From the NCBI GenBank assembly GCA_001179505.1, contig CDMY01000876.1:1-13700 (forward strand): DNA of 13,700 bases, in the 5' to 3' direction. Source of the stretch: Vitrella brassicaformis CCMP3155. Taxonomy: Eukaryota > Protista > Chromerida. Below are positions 3,717 to 13,700 of this stretch, one piece after another (the first letter of the stretch is position 1; every line of letters begins with the position of its first letter). Made by a program: the position numbers and the translations under genes. The notes under the pieces are model-generated. The model was given only the letters and a program-made list of their open reading frames with translations. It had not been told where the DNA came from and did not search any database.

Positions 3717-5381
3717 ATGGGTTGCTCCAGCAGCAGGAGCGAGGACGCTGAGAGCTCCTACAGGGCCGCGTCGGCCAAATCTGACGGCGAGATCATACGA
3801 TTCGAAGACAGAGAGGGTGCCAGCGACCCGCTGATGCCTGACCCCGGTGAGTGAGGGAAAGGGACCTGTGCGTCATTCCATTCCATTGCAATCATGACTC
3901 TTGTGTGAGTGTTTCTCTGGTGTGTTTGTCTGCAGATTTTGGTTGGCGTCGCGTTCCCCCTGCAAACGGAGGGACGAATGGCGTTGTCCCCAAGCCGTCC
4001 AAGAGCCTGGCTCTACCGCGGTCCAGAGGCCGAGGGTCCGCCAGCCACCACCCCAGCCTGGACGACCCTTACACCTACATCGCCTTCACCAACGTGCGAA
4101 CGGGCAAATCGTGCTCGGTCAGCCCCGTGACTCTCAGCATCAACATAGCTGTGAGGGCATCCCGGCTGGCTACACGGTTTGGCATTGAGGTGCCCACCGC
4201 TGACATCGACACTCCGGTCAGTCGGCATGTGTGCGACGCTGCCAGTCTGCATCACTTGTACAATGCGTCTGTCTCTTCTGCTTTGTGTATGTCGTTCAAC
4301 AGCCCATTTATGCCCTTCTTCGCGTTCCTTCGGGCTACGGGTGGAAGCTGCTGCCGTCCCCCTCGCCATTGGCGCCCCAGCTTACCACCGGCCGTCGGCG
4401 GACCAAAGCCATGTCGGTCGGTGGCGTCGAGTCGCCACAGACGGGCCTCTCCCCGGGAATATCTCCCCGTTCGTCACCGGATGAGGCGGGCGGCGGTGAC
4501 GACTACCGGCGGCTGGTGAGGATGCGGCAGGAGGGCATGCCGACCGTCAGGACCGACCCTGCTGAGATGGGTGAGTGACCGGATGGGTGGGTGGGTGGGN
4601 NNNNNNNNNNNNNNNNNNNNNNNNNNNNNNNNNNNNNNNNNNNNNNNNNNNNNNNNNNNNNNNNNNNNNNNNNNNNNNNNNNNNNNNNNNNNNNNNNNNN
4701 NNNNNNNNNNNNNNNNNNNNNNNNNNNNNNNNNNNNNNNNNNNNNNNNNNNNNNNNNNNNNNNNNNNNNNNNNNNNNNNNNNNNNNNNNNNNNNNNNNNN
4801 NNNNNNNNNNNNNNNNNNNNNNNNNNNNNNNNNNNNNNNNNNNNNNNNNNNNNNNNNNNNNNNNNNNNNNNNNNNNNNNNNNNNNNNNNNNNNNNNNNNG
4901 AGATGGGTGAGTGACCGGATGGGTGGGTGGGTGGGTGGGTGGGCGATGTTCCATCCATTGTATGTTTCATGTGTGTTGTCGTTTCTGCTGCCTGGCTGCC
5001 ATGCAGCGATGAACATCCACGAGCAGCTGTTCCGCTTGGAGGGTCAATCGACGCACAGCCACTTCTTGCCGCTGGAGACTTTCTCATGGGACGTCATCAG
5101 ATCCTCAGACCCTCCAAACAGGGACGAGCAGCCCGCTGTCCAGGTACGCTATGCATGGGGGCCTGGAAGGCCGGTTGAATGTCATGTGTGCTGCCTTCCA
5201 TCCGTCCACTCAGGTTCGTTCGCCGGACGGCGAGGCGTGCTCGGTGGTGCCAGAGGAGATCATGATGAACACGGTGACCTGGGTCGTGACCACATACCTT
5301 ACACAGGCGCCGGCCTTCCCACAGATGATGGCCACACAGCCCAAAGCCAGGGGCCGACCTCTCACACTCACCAGTGGATGA
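3717..5381 (+). CDS. Hypothetical protein, ~327 aa, predicted N-myristoylated/palmitoylated (MGCSSS); 5 exons (3717-3846, 3936-4216, 4303-4570, 5007-5143, 5214-5381)
   Basis: GT-AG junctions with consistent phases (1,0,1,0) give one open frame ending ...RGRPLTLTSG*. The N-terminus has G2, C3 and S6. Intron 3 contains an assembly gap. Confidence 0.75.
4600..4899. other. Assembly gap (300 N), probably spurious
   Basis: The 36 nt before the gap (4564-4599) are repeated exactly after it (4900-4935) and end in a (GGGT)n tract. Confidence 0.85.
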
Positions 5382-5701
5382 GGACTCTTGCTGCAACCCT
5401 GTCGGTCGCTCATTTGTCCTGTGAGTGTGATCGCGTGCGTATGTGTGTGTGTGAGTTTTTCTCTGAGGTCGTCCCCGAAGAGTGCTCGCATGTGAGTTGG
5501 AGATTTCGGTGTGAGTCCATGCGTTTTTGCCTTTCGACTGCACTGGTCTTTTCCACGTTGGCTTTTGAGACGTGTGTAGAGGTGGTGTGGCGTACGTGCT
5601 GGTGGTGGACAGCGAGGAAGTGCCGCGGCCCTCTTTTTGGCCAGCTGCCGGTGGCTCTGTGTCAGGAAAGACCCCTATGTGGGCATTCGATTCATCGGCC
5701 G

Positions 5702-5741
5702 CCAACAGGACGTGACGGCCACCAACAGGACGTGACGGCCA
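5702..5741 (+). repeat. Perfect 20-bp tandem duplication (ccaacaggacgtgacggcca x2)
   Basis: Directly visible: 5702-5721 = 5722-5741. Confidence 0.9.
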
Positions 5742-5847
5742 CCAGACATGTGGCACGTGAACAAAGGAGAGGTCCATGCAGCACATCATGTCAGACACGA
5801 ACTTGCAGAGAAGCAAACGCAGGGGAAGCGAGTCGCCCGAACTGCGG

Positions 5848-5989
5848 CGGCAGCTATCCTCTCTGCCCTTGACTTTCTTCTATGGCCTCCTCTTGTCCGC
5901 AGAAGGCCAATGCAAAGGTGCGGCGAGATAATATTTCGCGACGAGACGAGGGAGACAACCCCGCAAACCCTGATTTATAATTTGAAGTC
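5848..5989 (-). repeat. Inverted repeat, right copy (partner 1-130)
   Basis: Reverse complement matches 1-84 exactly and 107-130 at 22/24. Confidence 0.95.
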
Positions 5990-6204
5990 AACTTTCACAG
6001 TTTCCGCCCCTCGTTAGGCTTTCCAGCTTCTTTCCGCCACGAACGCCTCGTCTTTTTTTCCTTTCGCCTGCTTGGTGGCTTATGCAACGCCCTTCACACT
6101 TGTCCGGATGAAATCTGTCCCTTCCTTCCCCGCCGCTATGCCGCGAGCGAGGCCTCATCAAACGACCGTCATCTCCTGAGTTCTGTTCATCCCTGCGGTT
6201 TTCC

Positions 6205-6236
6205 TGCGAGCTGAAGGACGAGATTGCAGGAGCTGC
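6205..6236 (+). promoter_or_regulatory. Conserved leader motif of the NOT1-like paralogues (copy A)
   Basis: tgcgagctgaaggacgagattgcaggagctgc is identical at 10548-10579 and matches 26/28 at 12802-12829. Each copy is followed downstream by a CAG-rich tract. The function is unknown. Confidence 0.55.
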
Positions 6237-6498
6237 GAAACTCAAGGGGGAGACATCGCAACCAGGAGAATAGCCGCCCAGTAGCAGCACACAGCAGTAG
6301 TAGTAGCGAGCATCCGGCCGACAGCCACGGCATCGCCGCTCGCTGCGTCCAGGAAGACGCCCAAGCTGACGCTCGCCTCTCCTTTCAGACTCGTGTCTCT
6401 CTCTGTCTCCTGAAACCGCTGCTGCGAAGCGAGACGGCCAAGAGACGGCAACAGCAGCAGCAGCAGGAACAAGAGCAGCACCAGCAGCAGCGACGACC

Positions 6499-7634
6499 AT
6501 GGGCGCCTCTGGCAGCAAGAAGGAGCTGACGGCCGAGAGCCACCCGCACCACCTCCTCCAAGACTTCCACGACCACCACATCGCCAAGAAGACGCCCACC
6601 CCGGGCTTCTGCTGCACCTGTGGAGCCCCGCCGCCTGCCGAGAAGCCTCCCATCGACGAGTTCAAGACGCTCATCTTCGCCCTCAGCAATGCCCCCGGCT
6701 GCGCCAACCTCAAGGTACGTTCGCGTGCGCAGAGGAGAGAGCAGCAACTTGAAGAGAAGGAATGAACCCGTCGCCATTCGTCTGTCATCATGTCTGTCAT
6801 GTGTTGGTTTTCTTGTGTGTGCGTGTTGCCCGCAGGGCAGGGAGGCAGCGCAACTGGTCACGGAGGACAACGTGCACCACCTGGCCTTCATGGTGATCGA
6901 GCGGGCGGCGGCCACTGAGAGGAGCGAGGACCGCACCACCCTCGCGACGTTCCTCGACGCCATCGATTCCCTACAGCCAATCCCCTTCGCCATCTCCAAG
7001 ACCAGCGGGCTGGTGATGAAGGCCATCGACCACCTGTCGGAATACGCCACCTGCAGCCCCACCGCCGACGACGTCAAGAACAGGAGGACACTGGCCAACT
7101 TGGGGGACTTTGCCGGCAAGCTCCTCGCCAAGCTGGACCATCATGCCGCTGCCCCCTTCACCGAACGCCTCCCCGCAATGCTCGAGAAGGCGTGCAAGGA
7201 CGGGCGACTGCTGACGGTCGTCCCCCTTGTATGCAACATCATGCAGCACATATCGAGCATCGGCATTGGTGATGACGACGTGTTGGGCATGCTAAAGGAG
7301 ATCGTGGAGCTCCCTACCATTCGGCTGCAGCTGGAGTTCGACATCGTGCGGCTGTTCAAGCAGCTGGACATCAACATCGAGACTCTGCGGACGACGGGGC
7401 GAGTGAGGGCTAAGGCGATGGCGGCGCCACAGGCAAGTCGTGGGGTCTCCATCCCTCCACTCAGGTTCGTTCGTCTTTGGGGGGATAGTGGTTCATCGCG
7501 TAGAGGATCTGCTGGATCCCCATGTGCGGATGATCGACTTGGCATGCTGCGTGTGTGTGCAGCATCGCTGCTTACATTTTATATTCCGATGGCTGTGTTG
7601 TTGGTTCCGTCGTGCTCACTCTGGTGTGGATTAG
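6499..7634 (+). CDS. Myristoylated stand-alone CNOT1 (NOT1) CAF1/DDX6-binding MIF4G-domain protein, copy A, ~271 aa plus a short tail; exons 6499-6714, 6836-7432 and a tentative 7563-7634
   Basis: Starts MGASGSKK. By-eye alignment to the CNOT1 MIF4G domain as recalled: KPPIDEFKTLIFALSN ~ EPPENIQEKIAFIFNN; MVIER ~ LVMKR; RRTLANLGDFAGKL ~ RSLLKNLGHWLGMI; DGRLLTVVPLVCNIM ~ ELLYVVPFVAKVL; IRLQLEFDIVRLFKQLDINI ~ [20 protein letters not shown]. GT-AG intron 6715-6835. The 3' end depends on a GC donor at 7433; unspliced read-through stops at 7657. Confidence 0.8.
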
Positions 7635-8079
7635 GCAGACTGAATGGGTATGACTGACGGGCGCTGTGAGGGGCGTGCAGACCGATGACATCTGGATGAA
7701 TTTCTGTTAGCCAAGAGAGTCCATTGACGGATAAGTGTATAATACACACACGCATAGCATCCGGGGGAGGGGGTCCCCTCACTCACGCAGCACTAAGAAC
7801 AGAACGTGATGACACCGAAACAGCGCCCATGCAGCGTGAAAGATGGATAATAGCAGGTCTCTCTCATGCACTTTACAGTCAGGACTTCCATCCACCTCGT
7901 CAGCTACGGACCTATCTGCACTCAGCACTCACGAACGCCGTCGTTACCGACAGACAGCCACAGATCGACGCCCACGGACCGACATGACTACATCTTCCCA
8001 TCGTGCACATCCGTCCGTCGCCCGCCCCATCGCCACCATCAAGTGACCCACACCCTGGGTGGGGTGGGTGCATCCCCAT

Positions 8080-8221
8080 GTTTGTCGTCCAGCGTCTTTG
8101 TGGTGGCGCCAGCTGGAAGTGTCGGCAGGCGGCCGGACGCCGCCGCTGATGTAGACGCCGAGCACGTATGTGTCCTTACGGACGATGATCAGCCAACACA
8201 ATGGAGCCGTTGACAGACGAC
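8080..8221 (-). pseudogene. TLDc-domain relic (internally deleted fragment)
   Basis: The acceptor CAG is followed by SSVNGS (cf. SSVDGS at 9040-9059), then frameshifted LIIVRKDTYVLGVYISGG, which resembles the TLDc 'llivk...vFGaf' segment. Confidence 0.55.
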
Positions 8222-8565
8222 CTGCGCTTGACAGACAGACAGACACACACACACACGACTCTTCATCTACACTCATAGTGCGGACGTTTGTGAGTGGTTG
8301 TGTACCGGTAGATGAGGGTGAGTAAGACATCGCGGTCTCTGCGTTCGCGCCAAAAAAGACTGAAACTTCAGTCACGCGAAGCTGCGGCCTATCCACACAC
8401 ACTCTGAACGGTGTCCACACACACATACATGTCGCTGTGTGTGTACACATTCGCTTCTCCACGGACAGCGAAACGAACCACGAGGGAAAGTCAAGTAGAG
8501 AGAGCTATACAGATGCCCTCAGGTACCCATGCACCACAGGCAGCAGCGGGGCCCGCACTGCTCTC

Positions 8566-9220
8566 TCACCGTACGGCCCGGACCTCCAGCTCGTCCGCCA
8601 CGAACACCTCACTGCCCCCAAGTGGCACAGGCAGTGCCAGGCTTATCTGTCCCCTCTCCCAGGTAATATCCGTCCCCATCCGTAGGCAGCCAGGTCATGG
8701 GCAGACGTCAGCAGCATAGCTAGTGCTGCCGTCCCCGGACCCCAGCCACCCAACACCCACACATCCCAGTGGCCGGCCACGATTCTTCTCCCTAGCCGCC
8801 ACCTCCACAACTGGGGGATGGGAGAAATGGGGCATCTCGCTCCTTCTCGGTGTGGAGTAGTGCCGGGACAGCGAGAAGAACCACGAGTCAGTCACTTCAA
8901 TACTGGCGGCTCATCGTCTGGTCGGCAGGCAGCACAATGCCGCGAGTGACTGACGTCAGTGCCGAACAAAGTCAGCAGGTTGCGGACCATGATCAGTAGG
9001 GACCTCCTGCCGGCCACACGCTCGAGGAAGTCATGATACTTGGAGCCATCTACAGACGACTTGCACCACACACAGACAGACAGACAGACACGAGCCTTGA
9101 TCTGCACTGAGTGCGCGTTTGTGTTGGTTTGTGTTGGTTTGTCTTTCGCCCATCGCATGGCCCGCTGCCGCTGTCCGCCGGTACATGTACTTCCATGCCG
9201 ATGAAGAGGCCGCCATCCAC
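8566..9220 (-). pseudogene. TLDc (TLD) domain pseudogene, copy 1, cut at 9220/9221
   Basis: Ordered TLDc motifs: WKYMYR|SSVDGSKYHDFLERVAGRRSLLIMVR, then WFFSLS, VVEVAARE, SYAADV, then LGGSEVFVADELEVRAVR*. There is a frameshift near 8890, an internal TGA at 8695-8697 and degenerate splice sites. Confidence 0.7.
8742..9220 (+). repeat. ~480-bp direct repeat, copy 1 (partner 9944-10417)
   Basis: Near-identical by eye, with a handful of substitutions and small indels, including one in the (GACA)n/(CA)n tract. Confidence 0.95.
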
Positions 9221-9641
9221 CACTACCCGACAAGGTGCGGCGAAAAGCTGGAGTTCCGGCCGGAAAGCTGAGAGGAGGCGGGGAAAGCTAGCTAGGCCCA
9301 CAGAAGGCTAGCTAAGCCCGCGGAAAGCCAGCCAGCCACCCGGAAAGCTGGCCAGACCACCCGGAAAGCCAGCTTTCCAGGTCTCCCTGCCAGCTTGCCA
9401 GCCAGAAAGCTGGATGTCCAGCCGGAAAGCTGGCCAGACCACCCGGAAAGCTGGCCTTCCGGGCCTCCCTGCCAGCTTGCCAGCCGGAAAGCTGGCTGTC
9501 CCGCCCTCCTGTGTGCTCAGAGGGCGGAAAGCTGGCCTTCTTCACTGATGCGAAGGCCTCCACGGACAGCCCTGCGACTCTCTTCATGAGTCATTGACTG
9601 TCAGTGAATGAATGCCATGCATTGGCTCCATCGGTCCAAAA
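9221..9641 (+). mobile_element. Putative left end of a CACTA/EnSpm-like element with a subterminal repeat array
   Basis: Starts CACTAC exactly where the duplicated TLDc segment breaks. About 12 CGGAAAGC(T/C)-type motifs at ~20-21 bp spacing (9241-9534). The right end is not visible because of the gap. Confidence 0.45.
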
Positions 9642-9941
9642 NNNNNNNNNNNNNNNNNNNNNNNNNNNNNNNNNNNNNNNNNNNNNNNNNNNNNNNNNNN
9701 NNNNNNNNNNNNNNNNNNNNNNNNNNNNNNNNNNNNNNNNNNNNNNNNNNNNNNNNNNNNNNNNNNNNNNNNNNNNNNNNNNNNNNNNNNNNNNNNNNNN
9801 NNNNNNNNNNNNNNNNNNNNNNNNNNNNNNNNNNNNNNNNNNNNNNNNNNNNNNNNNNNNNNNNNNNNNNNNNNNNNNNNNNNNNNNNNNNNNNNNNNNN
9901 NNNNNNNNNNNNNNNNNNNNNNNNNNNNNNNNNNNNNNNNN
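9642..9941. other. Assembly gap (300 N)
   Basis: Run of N. Confidence 0.99.
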
Positions 9942-9943
9942 GG

Positions 9944-10452
9944 CCAGCCACCCAACACCCACACATCCCAGTGGCCGGCCACGATTCTCCTCCCTAGCCG
10001 CCACCTCCACAACTGGGGGATGGGAGAAATGGGGCATCTCGCTCCTTCTCGGTGTGAGGTAGTGCCAGGACAGCGAGAAGAACCACAGTCAGTCACTTCA
10101 ATACTGGCGGCTCATCGTCTGGCCGGCAGGCAGCACAATGCCGCGAGTGACTGACGTCAGTGCCGAACGAAGTCAGCAGGTTGCGGACCATGATCAGTAG
10201 GGACCTCCTGCCGGCCACACGCTCGAGGAAGTCATGATACTTGGAGCCATCTACAGACGACTTGCACCACAGACAGACAGACAGACACGAGCCTTGATCT
10301 GCACTGAGTGCGCGTTTGTGTTGGTTTGTGTTGGTTTGTCTTTCGCCCATCGCATGGCCCGCTGCCGCTGTCCGCCGGTACATGTACTTCCATGCCGATG
10401 AAGAGGCCGCCATCCACAGCGAGCAGAGGCGACTGACCTGATGATGACTCAT
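9944..10452 (-). pseudogene. TLDc pseudogene copy 2 (direct-repeat partner of 8742-9220), uninterrupted at the insertion site
   Basis: Same decayed motifs. The frame continues upstream as QVSRLCSLWMAASSSAWKYMYR. The 3' part runs into the gap. Confidence 0.65.
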
Positions 10453-10547
10453 TCATTTCGCCCGCTCACCTACAGGCTTCTGTTTCCGCCTCATAATCAC
10501 TGAGCCTAAACCAGCAGGGAAGCGCGGGAGTTTCATTGTGGGGGCAG

Positions 10548-10579
10548 TGCGAGCTGAAGGACGAGATTGCAGGAGCTGC
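10548..10579 (+). promoter_or_regulatory. Conserved NOT1-like leader motif (copy B)
   Basis: 32/32 identical to 6205-6236. Confidence 0.55.
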
Positions 10580-10704
10580 AAAGCGCGGTGCGCGCGCAGG
10601 ACGGCAGCAGCACCAGCGGCTGCAGCAGCAGTAGCAGCAGTAGCAGCAGCAACAGCGACTCGAGAACAGCGACGGCCAACAGCGAGGAGCAGCAGGAGCG
10701 GGAG

Positions 10705-11275
10705 ATGGAGCTGCTGGGCCAGCTCAGCCCCGAGGAGCAGGCCGCTATCTACGGGAAGGAGCGCGAGGTCAACAAAGGCGACGCTGCAGTGAGATGGATG
10801 TGCGCAAATGACATACACGTGCATCCCCACACTGACACCCTGGTCTGGTCTCCCCCTGTCTGTCGGTCTTGTCAGCTGGATGCGAGGCTCGCCAGCCGCA
10901 CCCAGGAGCTGACTCTGCAGTACCAGGGCGTGGCCAACACCGAGGTGGGTGGGAGGGTGGGCTGAGTGTCACATAGACAGATGCGGGCAAGGGTGGACGG
11001 CCTCACTGGCTCACTCGTGAGTACATCTGTGTGTGTGTGTGTGCGTGTGTGTGTGCAGGAGGAGGATGGGGAGGAGGACGATGGGCAGGTGCCCGAGTGG
11101 TTGGATGAGCCCCTCCCACAGCACACCTCGCTGCCGGTAGGCAAGGCACCCCACAATCAAAAGACCGACGTGTGACATACACACGTGTGTGTGTGCGTGT
11201 GTGTGTGCACATCTTGGTGGTTTCTACCAGTTGGCCACCCAGCCGCAGCAGCAGCCCCAAAGCTTCTCCCGCTAG
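10705..11275 (+). CDS. Small acidic hypothetical ORF or gene fragment, 91 aa, 4 exons (10705-10788, 10876-10944, 11059-11136, 11231-11275)
   Basis: Three phase-0 GT-AG introns with typical (GT)n acceptors give MELLGQLSPEEQAAIYGKERE...EEDGEEDDGQVPEWLDEPLP...LATQPQQQPQSFSR*. The frame is open upstream to 10558, so the start is uncertain. Confidence 0.5.
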
Positions 11276-11565
11276 TCCATCCGTCGATGCCCGTCCGCCT
11301 GTTTGTCCGCCTCGCTGTCCGTCCATCCCGTGTTGCGTGTCCGCCCACACCCCCGTGTACTCGACTGCCATGGCTGCCGACACTCCACCTGTCTGCCCAC
11401 CTTTCCGACTCTTCGACTGCTCCAACCACGCCGCCACTCCCCCATTCTTACCCTCCCTGCCCCGTCGAGCACTCAAGGCGACCCTCATGACACACCAGCA
11501 GCAGCAAGCGGCCCCCCCGCAGCTACTGGAGCGGAAGGTGTTTCAAGATGCTCTCGCGGCGGGCC

Positions 11566-12076
11566 TCCCTCGGCCAACGACTTGGCCTACAGGAAGGCGA
11601 TGGCCAACCTGGGGGACCTGCTAGGCAAGCTCCTCGCCCTGGTCGACCACCACGCCGCCGCCCCCTTCACCAGCCGCCTCCCTGGCATGCTCGAGACGGC
11701 CTGCAGGGATGGCCACCTCCTGACGCTGCTGCCCGTCGTGTGCGGCATCCTGCGGCAGCTCTCGGCCAGTGGGGTGGAAGGTGATGGCGATGTGCAGACC
11801 GCTCTGAGCATGCTCAAGGACATCGGAGACCTGCCGAACATCCGGCTGCAGCTGCAGTTCAACGTTGTCCGGCTCTTCAAGGAGCTCCAGCTCGACATCG
11901 ACAGCCTGCAGACCACAGGGCGGGTCAGCACCACGGCCATGGCGGCGTCAGAAGTAAGGCACCACCACCCGCCCACATGACGTGCCTCATGGGTGTGTCG
12001 TGTCCCTTGTGTGTGTTTCGTGTGTGTGTCGTGTGTCCTATCTATTTGTGTGTGTCAGGTCCAAGAGCAATCTTGA
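11566..12076 (+). pseudogene. 5'-truncated NOT1-MIF4G paralogue, copy B (C-terminal half; exon to 11953, intron 11954-12058, tail VQEQS*)
   Basis: 11579-11775 differs from copy C 13504-13700 at 3 of 197 nt. It lacks the MGASGS exon and the first half of the domain. First in-domain ATG is at 11600. Confidence 0.75.
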
Positions 12077-12801
12077 AGGCCGCGGCTGAGCTGAGGAGGG
12101 CAAGTGAAGACCCACACCACAGCACACTCACTACACCCACCGCTATGCCGCCACCACGTGTGTGCTGCCTGCGTGCCTGTGATCGGAGGGGAGGAGGGGT
12201 CACAACACAATGAGCTGCTGCTGCTGCTGCTGATCTGCCTACCATCACCATATACCATATCATCACACCACTACACTGACTGCACCCACTACTATCTGAC
12301 GATGAGCGGGCGAGCGACAGAGAGCGAGGGGGTGCGGTGCAATGGACTGGCTGACCGTCGGCGACATGTCACGGGTGGTCTGCTGCGACTGACCATCCCA
12401 CCACAACACACACAACACACAACCTTTTGGTGCCACTGGGCGCCACCACGTGACTTGACTATCGTGGCCCACAGCCAGAGAGGTAGAGAGACAGACAGGT
12501 CATCGATGGGTGTGTTTATGGGGGGTTGTGTGTGTGGATGGGTCGGTTGGCTGGGCTGCAATTCACTCATTACCTTTTTGTCGATGGATGCTTGCCGCCT
12601 AGGATCTCCGAGTCGTGACAGCCACCGACACGGCCGTGGCTTCGAGGCGACAGATTGCATTGGCGAGGGTGGGTGTGGCGTTCAGTGTTTTGATGGGTGG
12701 CAGAGTTGGCTGGTCCTTTTTTGTGGGTGTGTGGTTCTGTACAGAAGGTTCTGTAGACGTCATGGAATCTAGGGGCATCTAGTGAGCGATAGATCCCAAG
12801 G

Positions 12802-12829
12802 TGCGAGCTGAAGGACGAGCTTACAGGAG
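12802..12829 (+). promoter_or_regulatory. Conserved NOT1-like leader motif (copy C)
   Basis: 26/28 match to the copy A/B motif. Confidence 0.5.
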
Positions 12830-12911
12830 GGAGCCGAAAGGCGAAGAAGAGGAGACGGCAGCAGCAGTAGTAGCAGCAGCAGCACCAGCAGCAGCAGCAA
12901 CAGCGACGACC

Positions 12912-13700
12912 ATTGGCGCCTCTGGCAGCAAGAACCAGGAGCTGACGGCCGAGAGCCACCCGCACCGCCTCCTCCAGGACTTCTACGACGAGTGCATCAG
13001 CAGGAAGGCCTCCGCCCCGGCCTTCTGCTGCCCTTTCAGCTGCTGTGGCAGCCCCGCGCTCGTTGAGAAGGCGCCGCTCGACAATTTCAAGACCTTCCTA
13101 TTCGCCCTCAGCAACGCCCCGGGCTGCGCCACCTGCAAGGTACGTTCGTGTGCGCAGAGCAAAGAGCAGCAACTTGAAGGGAATGAACTCGCCGTCTGGC
13201 ATCATGTCTGTCTGTCTGTCTGTCATGTGTTGGTTTGCTGTGTGTGCGTGTCGTGTTGCCTGGCTGCAGGGCAGGGAGGCTGCTCATCTGGTGACGGAGG
13301 ACAACATCAGCCACCTGGCCTTCATGGTGGTCGAGAGGGCGGCGACGGCCGAGAGGGACGAGGACCGCAGCACCCTCGCCACATTCATCGCCGCCATCGA
13401 CACCCTCCAGCCCGTCCCATTCGCCACCCTCAAGAGCAGCCGCGTGGTGATGGCCGCCATCGACCACCTGTCCGCCTACGCCACCAGCAGCCCCACCGCC
13501 GAGGACTTGGCCTACAGGAAGGCCATGGCCAACCTGGGGGACCTGCTAGGCAAGCTCCTCGCCCTGGTCGACCACCACGCCGCCGCCCCCTTCACCAGCC
13601 GCCTCCCTGGCATGCTCGAGAGGGCCTGCAGGGACGGCCACCTCCTGACGCTGCTGCCCGTCGTGTGCGGCATCCTGCGGCAGCTCTCGGCCAGTGGGGT
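12912..13700 (+). pseudogene. NOT1-MIF4G paralogue, copy C, with the start codon read as ATT; exon 12912-13139, intron 13140-13269, exon 13270 to the window end
   Basis: cagcgacgaccATTggcgcctctggcagcaag versus copy A cagcgacgaccATGggcgcctctggcagcaag. The spliced frame is otherwise open with no stops. The intron is homologous to copy A's in position and sequence. An upstream in-frame TGA lies at 12783 with no ATG in between. Confidence 0.7.

Follow-up and report, generated by a model that had tools for sequence, protein, structure and literature searches.

Can one module of the NOT1 scaffold persist as a gene of its own and, if so, what would it do when separated from all other parts of CCR4-NOT? 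This question is raised by genomic scaffold CDMY01000876.1 of Vitrella brassicaformis CCMP3155 (assembly GCA_001179505.1), whose entire 13,700 bp form the window analysed here. Vitrella, a chromerid, is a photosynthetic relative of Apicomplexa. NOT1 usually occurs as one very long scaffold protein. The initial annotation of this DNA, made from its letters, described a tandem family of three lipid-anchored proteins (A, B and C), each consisting of one NOT1-like MIF4G module that might tether or act as a decoy for CCR4-NOT partners. The public annotation has six genes on the scaffold and assigns Pfam family PF16415 to two of them, 6499-7488 and 11600-12076, whose products have 268 residues (CEM36035.1 / A0A0G4GY91, gene A in this work) and, from an internal Met, 123 residues (CEM36038.1, our copy B); UniProt holds both gene models under automatic names. 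Our analyses indicate that gene A is a stand-alone gene for a NOT1-type MIF4G domain. We give a probability of about 0.5 to the reading that it encodes a functional, probably myristoylated MIF4G protein in which canonical CAF1 binding has been lost and a remodelled surface serves another partner.

The identification of the module of gene A as a NOT1-type MIF4G domain is solid by profile and by fold. Full-length A matched Pfam profile PF16415 (CNOT1_CAF1_bind; length 225, gathering score 33.4) with 50.8 bits and E = 1.8e-13 over profile positions 24-216 of 225, no other Pfam domain was identified in A, and its exon 2 alone gave 50.4 bits (E = 2.5e-13). Copy B (40.9 bits, E = 2e-10, profile positions 101-218) and a further copy, E, from a different scaffold (40.2 bits) were matched as well, and the exon 2 fragment of copy C scored under the gathering score (20.5 bits, 3e-4) because it is truncated. 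The domain of A is complete, since alignment with canonical NOT1 fragments showed its first helix (residues 52-64) to be encoded in exon 1. An AlphaFold2 model of A, for which the input alignment contained canonical domains, had a predicted local distance difference test score (pLDDT) of 71 and a predicted template modelling score (pTM) of 0.73, with a helix predicted at residues 52-64 and pLDDT <50 for residues 1-19 and 22-48. Foldseek searches with this model returned human CNOT1 or yeast Not1 MIF4G as all 12 of the 12 best PDB matches (E 3e-6 to 1e-4). Superposition with VIA-align gave Z scores of 18.4-20.3 to human and yeast NOT1 MIF4G (root-mean-square deviation 2.7-3.3 Å over 202-227 residues) versus 15.2 or less to UPF2, eIF4G, CWC22 and Gle1, and an independent single-sequence model from the ESM Atlas (pTM 0.80) had a template modelling score of 0.73 to PF16415 clusters. 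The assignment made in the initial annotation was thus borne out by the profile match and by the superposition on CNOT1 MIF4G.

Gene A encodes a protein of about 270 residues (268-294), and the one NOT1-like module is all of NOT1 that it contains. An in-frame stop lies 43 codons 5' of the ATG of A, with no ATG in between, and the gene upstream is unrelated. Run X6 was the only one to look like RNA: its depth falls to zero in spacers, including the one 5' of A (5695-6330), and it has a GT..AG joint at 5140/5211, where this upstream gene is spliced. No TTP-binding, DUF3819 or Not1 domain was found on CDMY01000876.1 or adjoining copy E on its 171-kb scaffold, no other NOT1 domain was found next to any copy, and tblastn with A and E across the scaffold identified no copies or NOT1 pieces beyond A, B and C. 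At 268-294 residues, and having neither a DUF3819/CAF40-binding nor a C-terminal Not1 domain, A does not belong among orthologues of the NOT1 scaffold. These results, namely the upstream stop, the unrelated neighbours and the lack of any other NOT1 domain, establish A as a stand-alone NOT1-type MIF4G gene, as had been claimed. Regarding a canonical NOT1 of Vitrella, none was present among the at least 120 matches listed when a canonical NOT1 fragment served as query in a word-indexed search, phmmer with A identified no full-length Vitrella NOT1 at E <1e-3, and the supplement of PMC5862402 gives no Vitrella NOT1 accession.

To relate the surface of A to known partner contacts, residue numbering was anchored on PDB sequences and mapped through an alignment of A with canonical NOT1 fragments. 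Petit et al. 2012 (PMC3510486) reported that CAF1 is gripped by two loops of the NOT1 MIF4G domain, L(a6-a7), with residues N1207, K1208, P1209 and H1212, and L(a8-a9), with V1250-F1252 and the PPNPW motif; P1257 is the central knob, and P1209Y together with P1257Y abolishes CAF1 binding. In the alignment, the Vitrella proteins have KLDHHAAAPF where the canonical domain has KNKPIL (the N-K-P loop) and IGDDDV where it has FRPPNPW, and the a8-a9 loop of A is about 5 residues shorter. The canonical fragments retain PNPW or PNVW; neither NKP nor PPNPW is present in A. The replacement motifs AAAPF and D-x-DV are kept in A, B and E, the copies that span those loops, with AAAPF also in C. Based on this conservation, the CAF1 face appears to be constrained for something other than canonical CAF1 binding.

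The DDX6 surface gave a less clear result. According to Rouya et al. 2014 (PMC4138323), from which the contacts were taken and whose numbering is 5 below that of Petit et al., the RecA2 domain of DDX6 contacts F1098, L1101, S1102, E1137 and F1140. In a comparison with these published contact positions, one of five (the Glu) is identical in A and one is conservative; E100 of A is Arg in copy E. The DDX6 side is at best partly retained. The loss of NKP and PPNPW, together with this single identical contact, makes a CCR4-NOT decoy unlikely for CAF1 and leaves it open for DDX6. At the level of residues, the proposal that these proteins tether or titrate CCR4-NOT partners is therefore unsupported where CAF1 is concerned and finds little support in the case of DDX6.

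The N-terminus of A makes it the one intact candidate for a lipid anchor. PROSITE pattern PS00008 for N-myristoylation is G-{EDRKHPFYW}-x(2)-[STAGCN]-{P} after the initiator Met. As predicted, A starts MGASGSKK at 6499 and copy C has the same residues at 12912 behind ATT instead of ATG; the M-G-A-S-G-S-K start of A, with Lys-Lys following, fits the pattern and agrees with the N-myristoyltransferase consensus MGxxxS(K) that had been noted. Copy C reads IGASGSKN after its ATT, in the same ACC context as A, with no in-frame ATG between the upstream stops and the ATT. A relic exon of copy E reads M-G-S-T-N-S-I and also fits PS00008. Copy E has kept an MG-x-x-x-S start at an identity of 51%, from which it can be argued that such a start was under selection in the ancestor. 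Among the copies, A is intact and E has MGSTNS in a broken frame; B has no N-terminus and C no ATG. An AUG-initiated MG N-terminus would now be possible from A alone. The ATG of A stands in a Kozak-like context, ACCATGG. An FCC motif is kept in A, C and E, and that of A could be palmitoylated. The N-terminal extension of A is about 50 residues long, of which about 40 after the motif were of low confidence in the model, and it is probably flexible.

Comparisons of the copies pointed to constraint on the domain. Ratios of non-synonymous to synonymous substitution rates (dN/dS), calculated by the Nei-Gojobori method for the MIF4G part, were 0.36-0.56 in every comparison (Fisher p 7e-3 to 9e-8), and the low ratio held for A-E and C-E, where dS exceeded 1 (about 1.2). 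Exon 2 is open for 199 codons in A and 261 in E, while the other two frames have 4-6 stops. By these codon comparisons, the MIF4G part is under moderate purifying selection.

Gene A is transcribed. An X6 contig at 6492-6689, which includes the ATG, had a depth of 12, and a second at 7142-7324 was A-specific with 0 differences and a depth of 3.6; expression of A was confirmed by these two contigs. The first of them carries two variants typical of a chimeric copy described below (6647T and 6652C) and may be a graph chimera of the A and chimeric-copy loci. Of sampled 31-mers, X6 contained a share of 0.24 over 6400-7700 and 0.63 over 12780-13700; from this difference, C, or an unassembled near-twin of it, seems better expressed than A. 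Runs X1-X3 were rejected as RNA evidence, as their contigs are continuous through intron and spacers and represent DNA.

The wider family is small and mostly damaged. An exhaustive phmmer search with A against 1.84 billion representatives returned only four Vitrella proteins and four canonical NOT1 fragments (E 3e-7 to 5e-4), and a family-profile search returned Vitrella proteins only, without additions. The ESM Atlas and the AlphaFold DB contain short entries with PF16415 as their only domain, which resemble fragments of long NOT1 genes. At the locus itself the three copies lie at the positions first described, all on the + strand. The description of a tandem family of three stands as regards their number and falls short as regards their state, A alone being intact. 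Copy B, which lacks the N-terminus and half of the domain, starts mid-domain and is 96.7% identical to the matching segment of C (13492-13700). Copy C, which is not in the annotation, has 80% DNA identity to A (73% in the introns); self-BLAST matched 6442-7216 with 12852-13650 at 80% identity.

Beyond the window, copy E (P0004) lies between a SNF2 helicase gene and a NudC-like gene, and is 51% identical to A in protein sequence with an open exon 2. Its exon 1 begins ATG GGG TCG ACG AAC AGC and retains the FCC and EKPP..F motifs, and its frame is broken: these pieces lie in three frames, 20 nt are deleted and the exon junction is out of phase. A chimeric copy (P0002, 296 residues) on scaffold CDMY01001004.1 is A-like from codon 19 to 'LAKLDH', with 94.6% DNA identity, and joins this A-like 5' half to a 3' coding part like gene D of our window (positions 3281-3960 of L001, the DNA that holds P0002). 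Gene D is unrelated to the MIF4G genes, has a 5' leader like theirs and is followed by half-domain B. The D/A-like fusion and the common leader speak for exon shuffling or unequal recombination in the cluster, and the fusion, the order of D and B and the leader of D together indicate that the cluster is recombining. An AlphaFold DB cluster match, A0A0G4H1H3, is a 412-residue uncharacterised protein with a MIF4G-like fold at 102-361 (E 3e-3); its accession falls within the Vitrella/Chromera block, and judging by the modelled fold it could be a sixth relative that has diverged further.

Taken together, we propose that A descends from the MIF4G domain of NOT1 as a stand-alone, lineage-specific protein, made up of an extension of about 50 residues and a complete five-hairpin domain with no other NOT1 part. 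Its N-terminus would be myristoylated, placing the protein at the periphery of a membrane. It would no longer bind CAF1 canonically and, like other MIF4G domains, may bind or regulate some other partner through the remodelled, family-conserved surface; the most plausible candidate would be a DDX6/DOZI-type DEAD-box ATPase, or something new. The cluster around it is rearranging, with B as a half-domain relic, C as an apparently transcribed paralogue without ATG and at least two more damaged copies elsewhere in the genome. In its fullest form, which we regard as a long shot, the proposal is that a NOT1 MIF4G module tethered to a membrane and uncoupled from the deadenylase would there recruit or activate a DEAD-box ATPase of the DDX6/DOZI type, or else a new partner. 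If true, such a module would be a way to localise mRNA repression or storage in a free-living relative of the apicomplexans.

Several observations weigh against the reading of A as a functional myristoylated protein with a new partner. The DDX6 contact positions in A are L62, A65, P66, E100 and E103 (L for F, A for L, P for S and E for F, with the Glu kept), the argument for myristoylation of A consists of the motif, and exon 1 gave a dN/dS between A and C of 0.69, indistinguishable from 1. Expression of A is low (word depth 3-12 versus 127 in the gene 5' of it), X6 yielded no splice junction from the family, and the 3' end of A is ambiguous, with 7657 as its latest possible position. Phmmer and the profile search place the family in no organism besides Vitrella, and the N-terminus is intact in just one of at least five copies, that of A. 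With one species and mostly damaged copies, the locus is for now a curiosity rather than a solved mechanism. The low expression and the confinement to one species are also among the points that speak for a family of decaying partial NOT1 duplicates, transcribed relics without present function of which A has simply not been hit so far. The same can be said of the state of the copies, four of five being truncated, chimeric, frame-broken or without a start codon, of the small, repeat-rich, gapped scaffolds that hold them, and of dN/dS values just moderately below 1. We consider decay unlikely on balance, as the dN/dS of the MIF4G part is significantly below 1 in all comparisons, including those at dS of about 1.2, exon 2 has stayed open where the other frames have stops, the family-specific motifs are kept on one surface, and X6 contains a good share of the words of the C region (0.63).

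It is also conceivable, and in our judgement distinctly doubtful, that A is functional but soluble, a cytosolic regulator or decoy whose MG start is unmodified or irrelevant. Copies C and E, in both of which the MIF4G frame is open, could be produced only from a conserved internal Met (in FMV(I/V)ER) and would be free of an anchor, exon 1 is weakly constrained, and an over-expressed CNOT1 MIF4G fragment derepresses microRNA (miRNA) silencing in human cells (Huntzinger 2013, as cited in PMC4138323). However, proteins begun at the internal Met would miss the first one and a half HEAT repeats, the Kozak-like context is kept in A, and the MG-x-x-x-S start has survived in A and E at 51% identity and as a remnant in C. 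A very improbable explanation, which we rejected, is that mis-assembly or mis-annotation has broken up a long canonical NOT1 gene and that the exons belong to its interior. The scaffold is indeed short and gapped and C runs off its end, but the stop upstream of A, the unrelated neighbours, the RNA-free spacer and the lack of TTP-binding, DUF3819 or Not1 domains on the scaffold or beside E contradict this explanation, as does an identity to canonical MIF4G domains of just about 20%. We therefore retain the functional, probably myristoylated protein with a remodelled surface as the preferred reading of A.

MIF4G domains are partners of DEAD-box ATPases, as in eIF4G-eIF4A, Gle1-Dbp5 and CWC22-eIF4A3, and the domain also occurs by itself in small proteins, of which SLIP1/MIF4GD is one. 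The eIF4G, Gle1 and CWC22 domains have the fold in common with A (Z 12-15) and are more distant from it than NOT1 in both sequence and structure, while proteins of the SLIP1/MIF4GD type provide a precedent for a lone MIF4G domain acting as an adaptor or ATPase regulator. To our knowledge, none of eIF4G, Gle1, CWC22 and SLIP1/MIF4GD is N-myristoylated. The closest match of A is the CNOT1/Not1 MIF4G domain (PDB 4GMJ, 4GML, 4CT4, 5ANR and 4B89; PF16415), with which it shares the five-hairpin fold (Z about 20, 50.8 bits) and the core motifs LxNLG, VVPxV and LxLxF. The two differ in that A is about 20% identical, lies outside any scaffold of at least 2000 residues, has AAAPF/D-x-DV in place of NKP/PPNPW and four of five DDX6 contacts altered, and carries an MG lipidation motif.

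A NOT1-derived paralogue from the same apicomplexan/chromerid lineage is NOT1-G of Plasmodium, Babesia and Theileria, described by Hart et al. 2021 (PMC8562791) as the sole NOT1 duplication reported; according to these authors, none was annotated outside the Aconoidasida. In contrast to the Vitrella genes, which encode MIF4G alone, NOT1-G is full-length, with CAF1, CAF40, NOT4 and NOT1 domains (PMC8562791). An isolated module that titrates partners, as in the decoy idea, has a counterpart in the CNOT1 MIF4G fragment of Huntzinger 2013, which, as cited in PMC4138323, was dominant negative in miRNA silencing when over-expressed. The fragment is an experimental construct with its CAF1 and DDX6 sites intact, whereas most of those residues are gone from the Vitrella protein. 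We found no paper that combines MIF4G, NOT1 and myristoylation or that describes the Vitrella genes. The architecture is thus undescribed in the papers found, as had been supposed, but the sequence itself is not new, as the gene models and their Pfam label are public and the proteins already stand in UniProt under an automatic name. If our reading is correct, a MIF4G domain excised from NOT1, under selection, with a remodelled CAF1 face and a lipidation motif, would be a natural experiment on what the lone domain can do, and could indicate membrane-localised control of mRNA fate in chromerids.

The features of the window are collected in Table 1.

Table 1. Positions of the MIF4G copies and neighbouring elements on scaffold CDMY01000876.1.
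Feature	Position	Strand	Description
CAG-rich 5' leader of A	6442-6498	+	common to C (12852-12911), partly to D
Gene A exon 1	6499-6714	+	72 codons; opens with MGASGSKK, followed by a linker modelled at low confidence that contains FCC and by the first helix of MIF4G (residues 52-64)
Gene A intron	6715-6835	+	GT..AG; 73% identity to C intron
Gene A exon 2	6836-7432	+	remainder of MIF4G domain
479-bp repeat copy 1	8742-9220	no strand	left of gap; 97.7% identity to copy 2 (self-BLAST)
Assembly gap (N run)	9642-9941	no strand	intergenic, between the two repeat copies
479-bp repeat copy 2	9944-10417	no strand	right of gap (self-BLAST)
Gene D	10547-11275	+	annotated coding sequence 10705-11275, 91 residues, acidic, no Pfam family
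Copy B	11567-11953 + 12059-12076 (terminal exon)	+	5'-truncated relic, C-terminal half of MIF4G
Copy C exon 1	12912-13139	+	ATT replacing ATG, then GASGSKN..., FCC retained
Copy C exon 2	13270-13700	+	open MIF4G frame, cut by scaffold end

In the annotated model of A, exon 2 stops at 7402 and the segment 7465-7488 is added. The homology with B, in which AMAA.. follows GRV.., suggests instead that coding probably continues to 7432 and is followed by a GC donor, and we favour this model. The candidate 3' ends are 7402/7465, 7432/7562 and read-through. A multi-copy element of about 90 bp lies just 3' of A, at 7539-7629, and would contain a possible last exon of the gene; its DNA word depth is 8-9 times that of single-copy sequence, and three copies are present in L001 (199-294, 4067-4162 and 5742-5830).

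The gap at 9642-9941 is crossed by no reading frame of A, B or C, and lies about 2 kb past the last position at which A could end and some 600 bp 5' of the leader of D (~10547). The distance from A to B and the number of copies are given as assembled, with this gap in between. DNA contigs end at the repeat borders with alternative joins, for example from 8762 to 6449, which suggests further arrangements outside the assembly. A second gap, at 4600-4899 within the annotated gene 3717-5381, is bordered on both sides by an exact 36-nt repeat (4564-4599 = 4900-4935) and looks like an unmerged contig overlap rather than missing sequence. The left end of the scaffold (1-127) has a 96% inverted match to the 5' flank of gene A (5888-5989) and also matches L001 at 2114-2210; the upstream region of another, inverted copy may lie just past this end.

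In run X6, short contigs at 7749-7818 reached a very high depth of about 835, and there was a 1056-nt contig that links 7822 to 8353, matching the arrangement in L001 of the regions 7749-7822 and 8353-9220. The nominally intergenic DNA around 7749-9220, or its paralogue, is transcribed in part. Lastly, metagenomes of marine sediment from 2023-2025 contained up to 0.60 of the 31-mers of 12780-13700; those sediments harbour Vitrella or a nearly identical strain.

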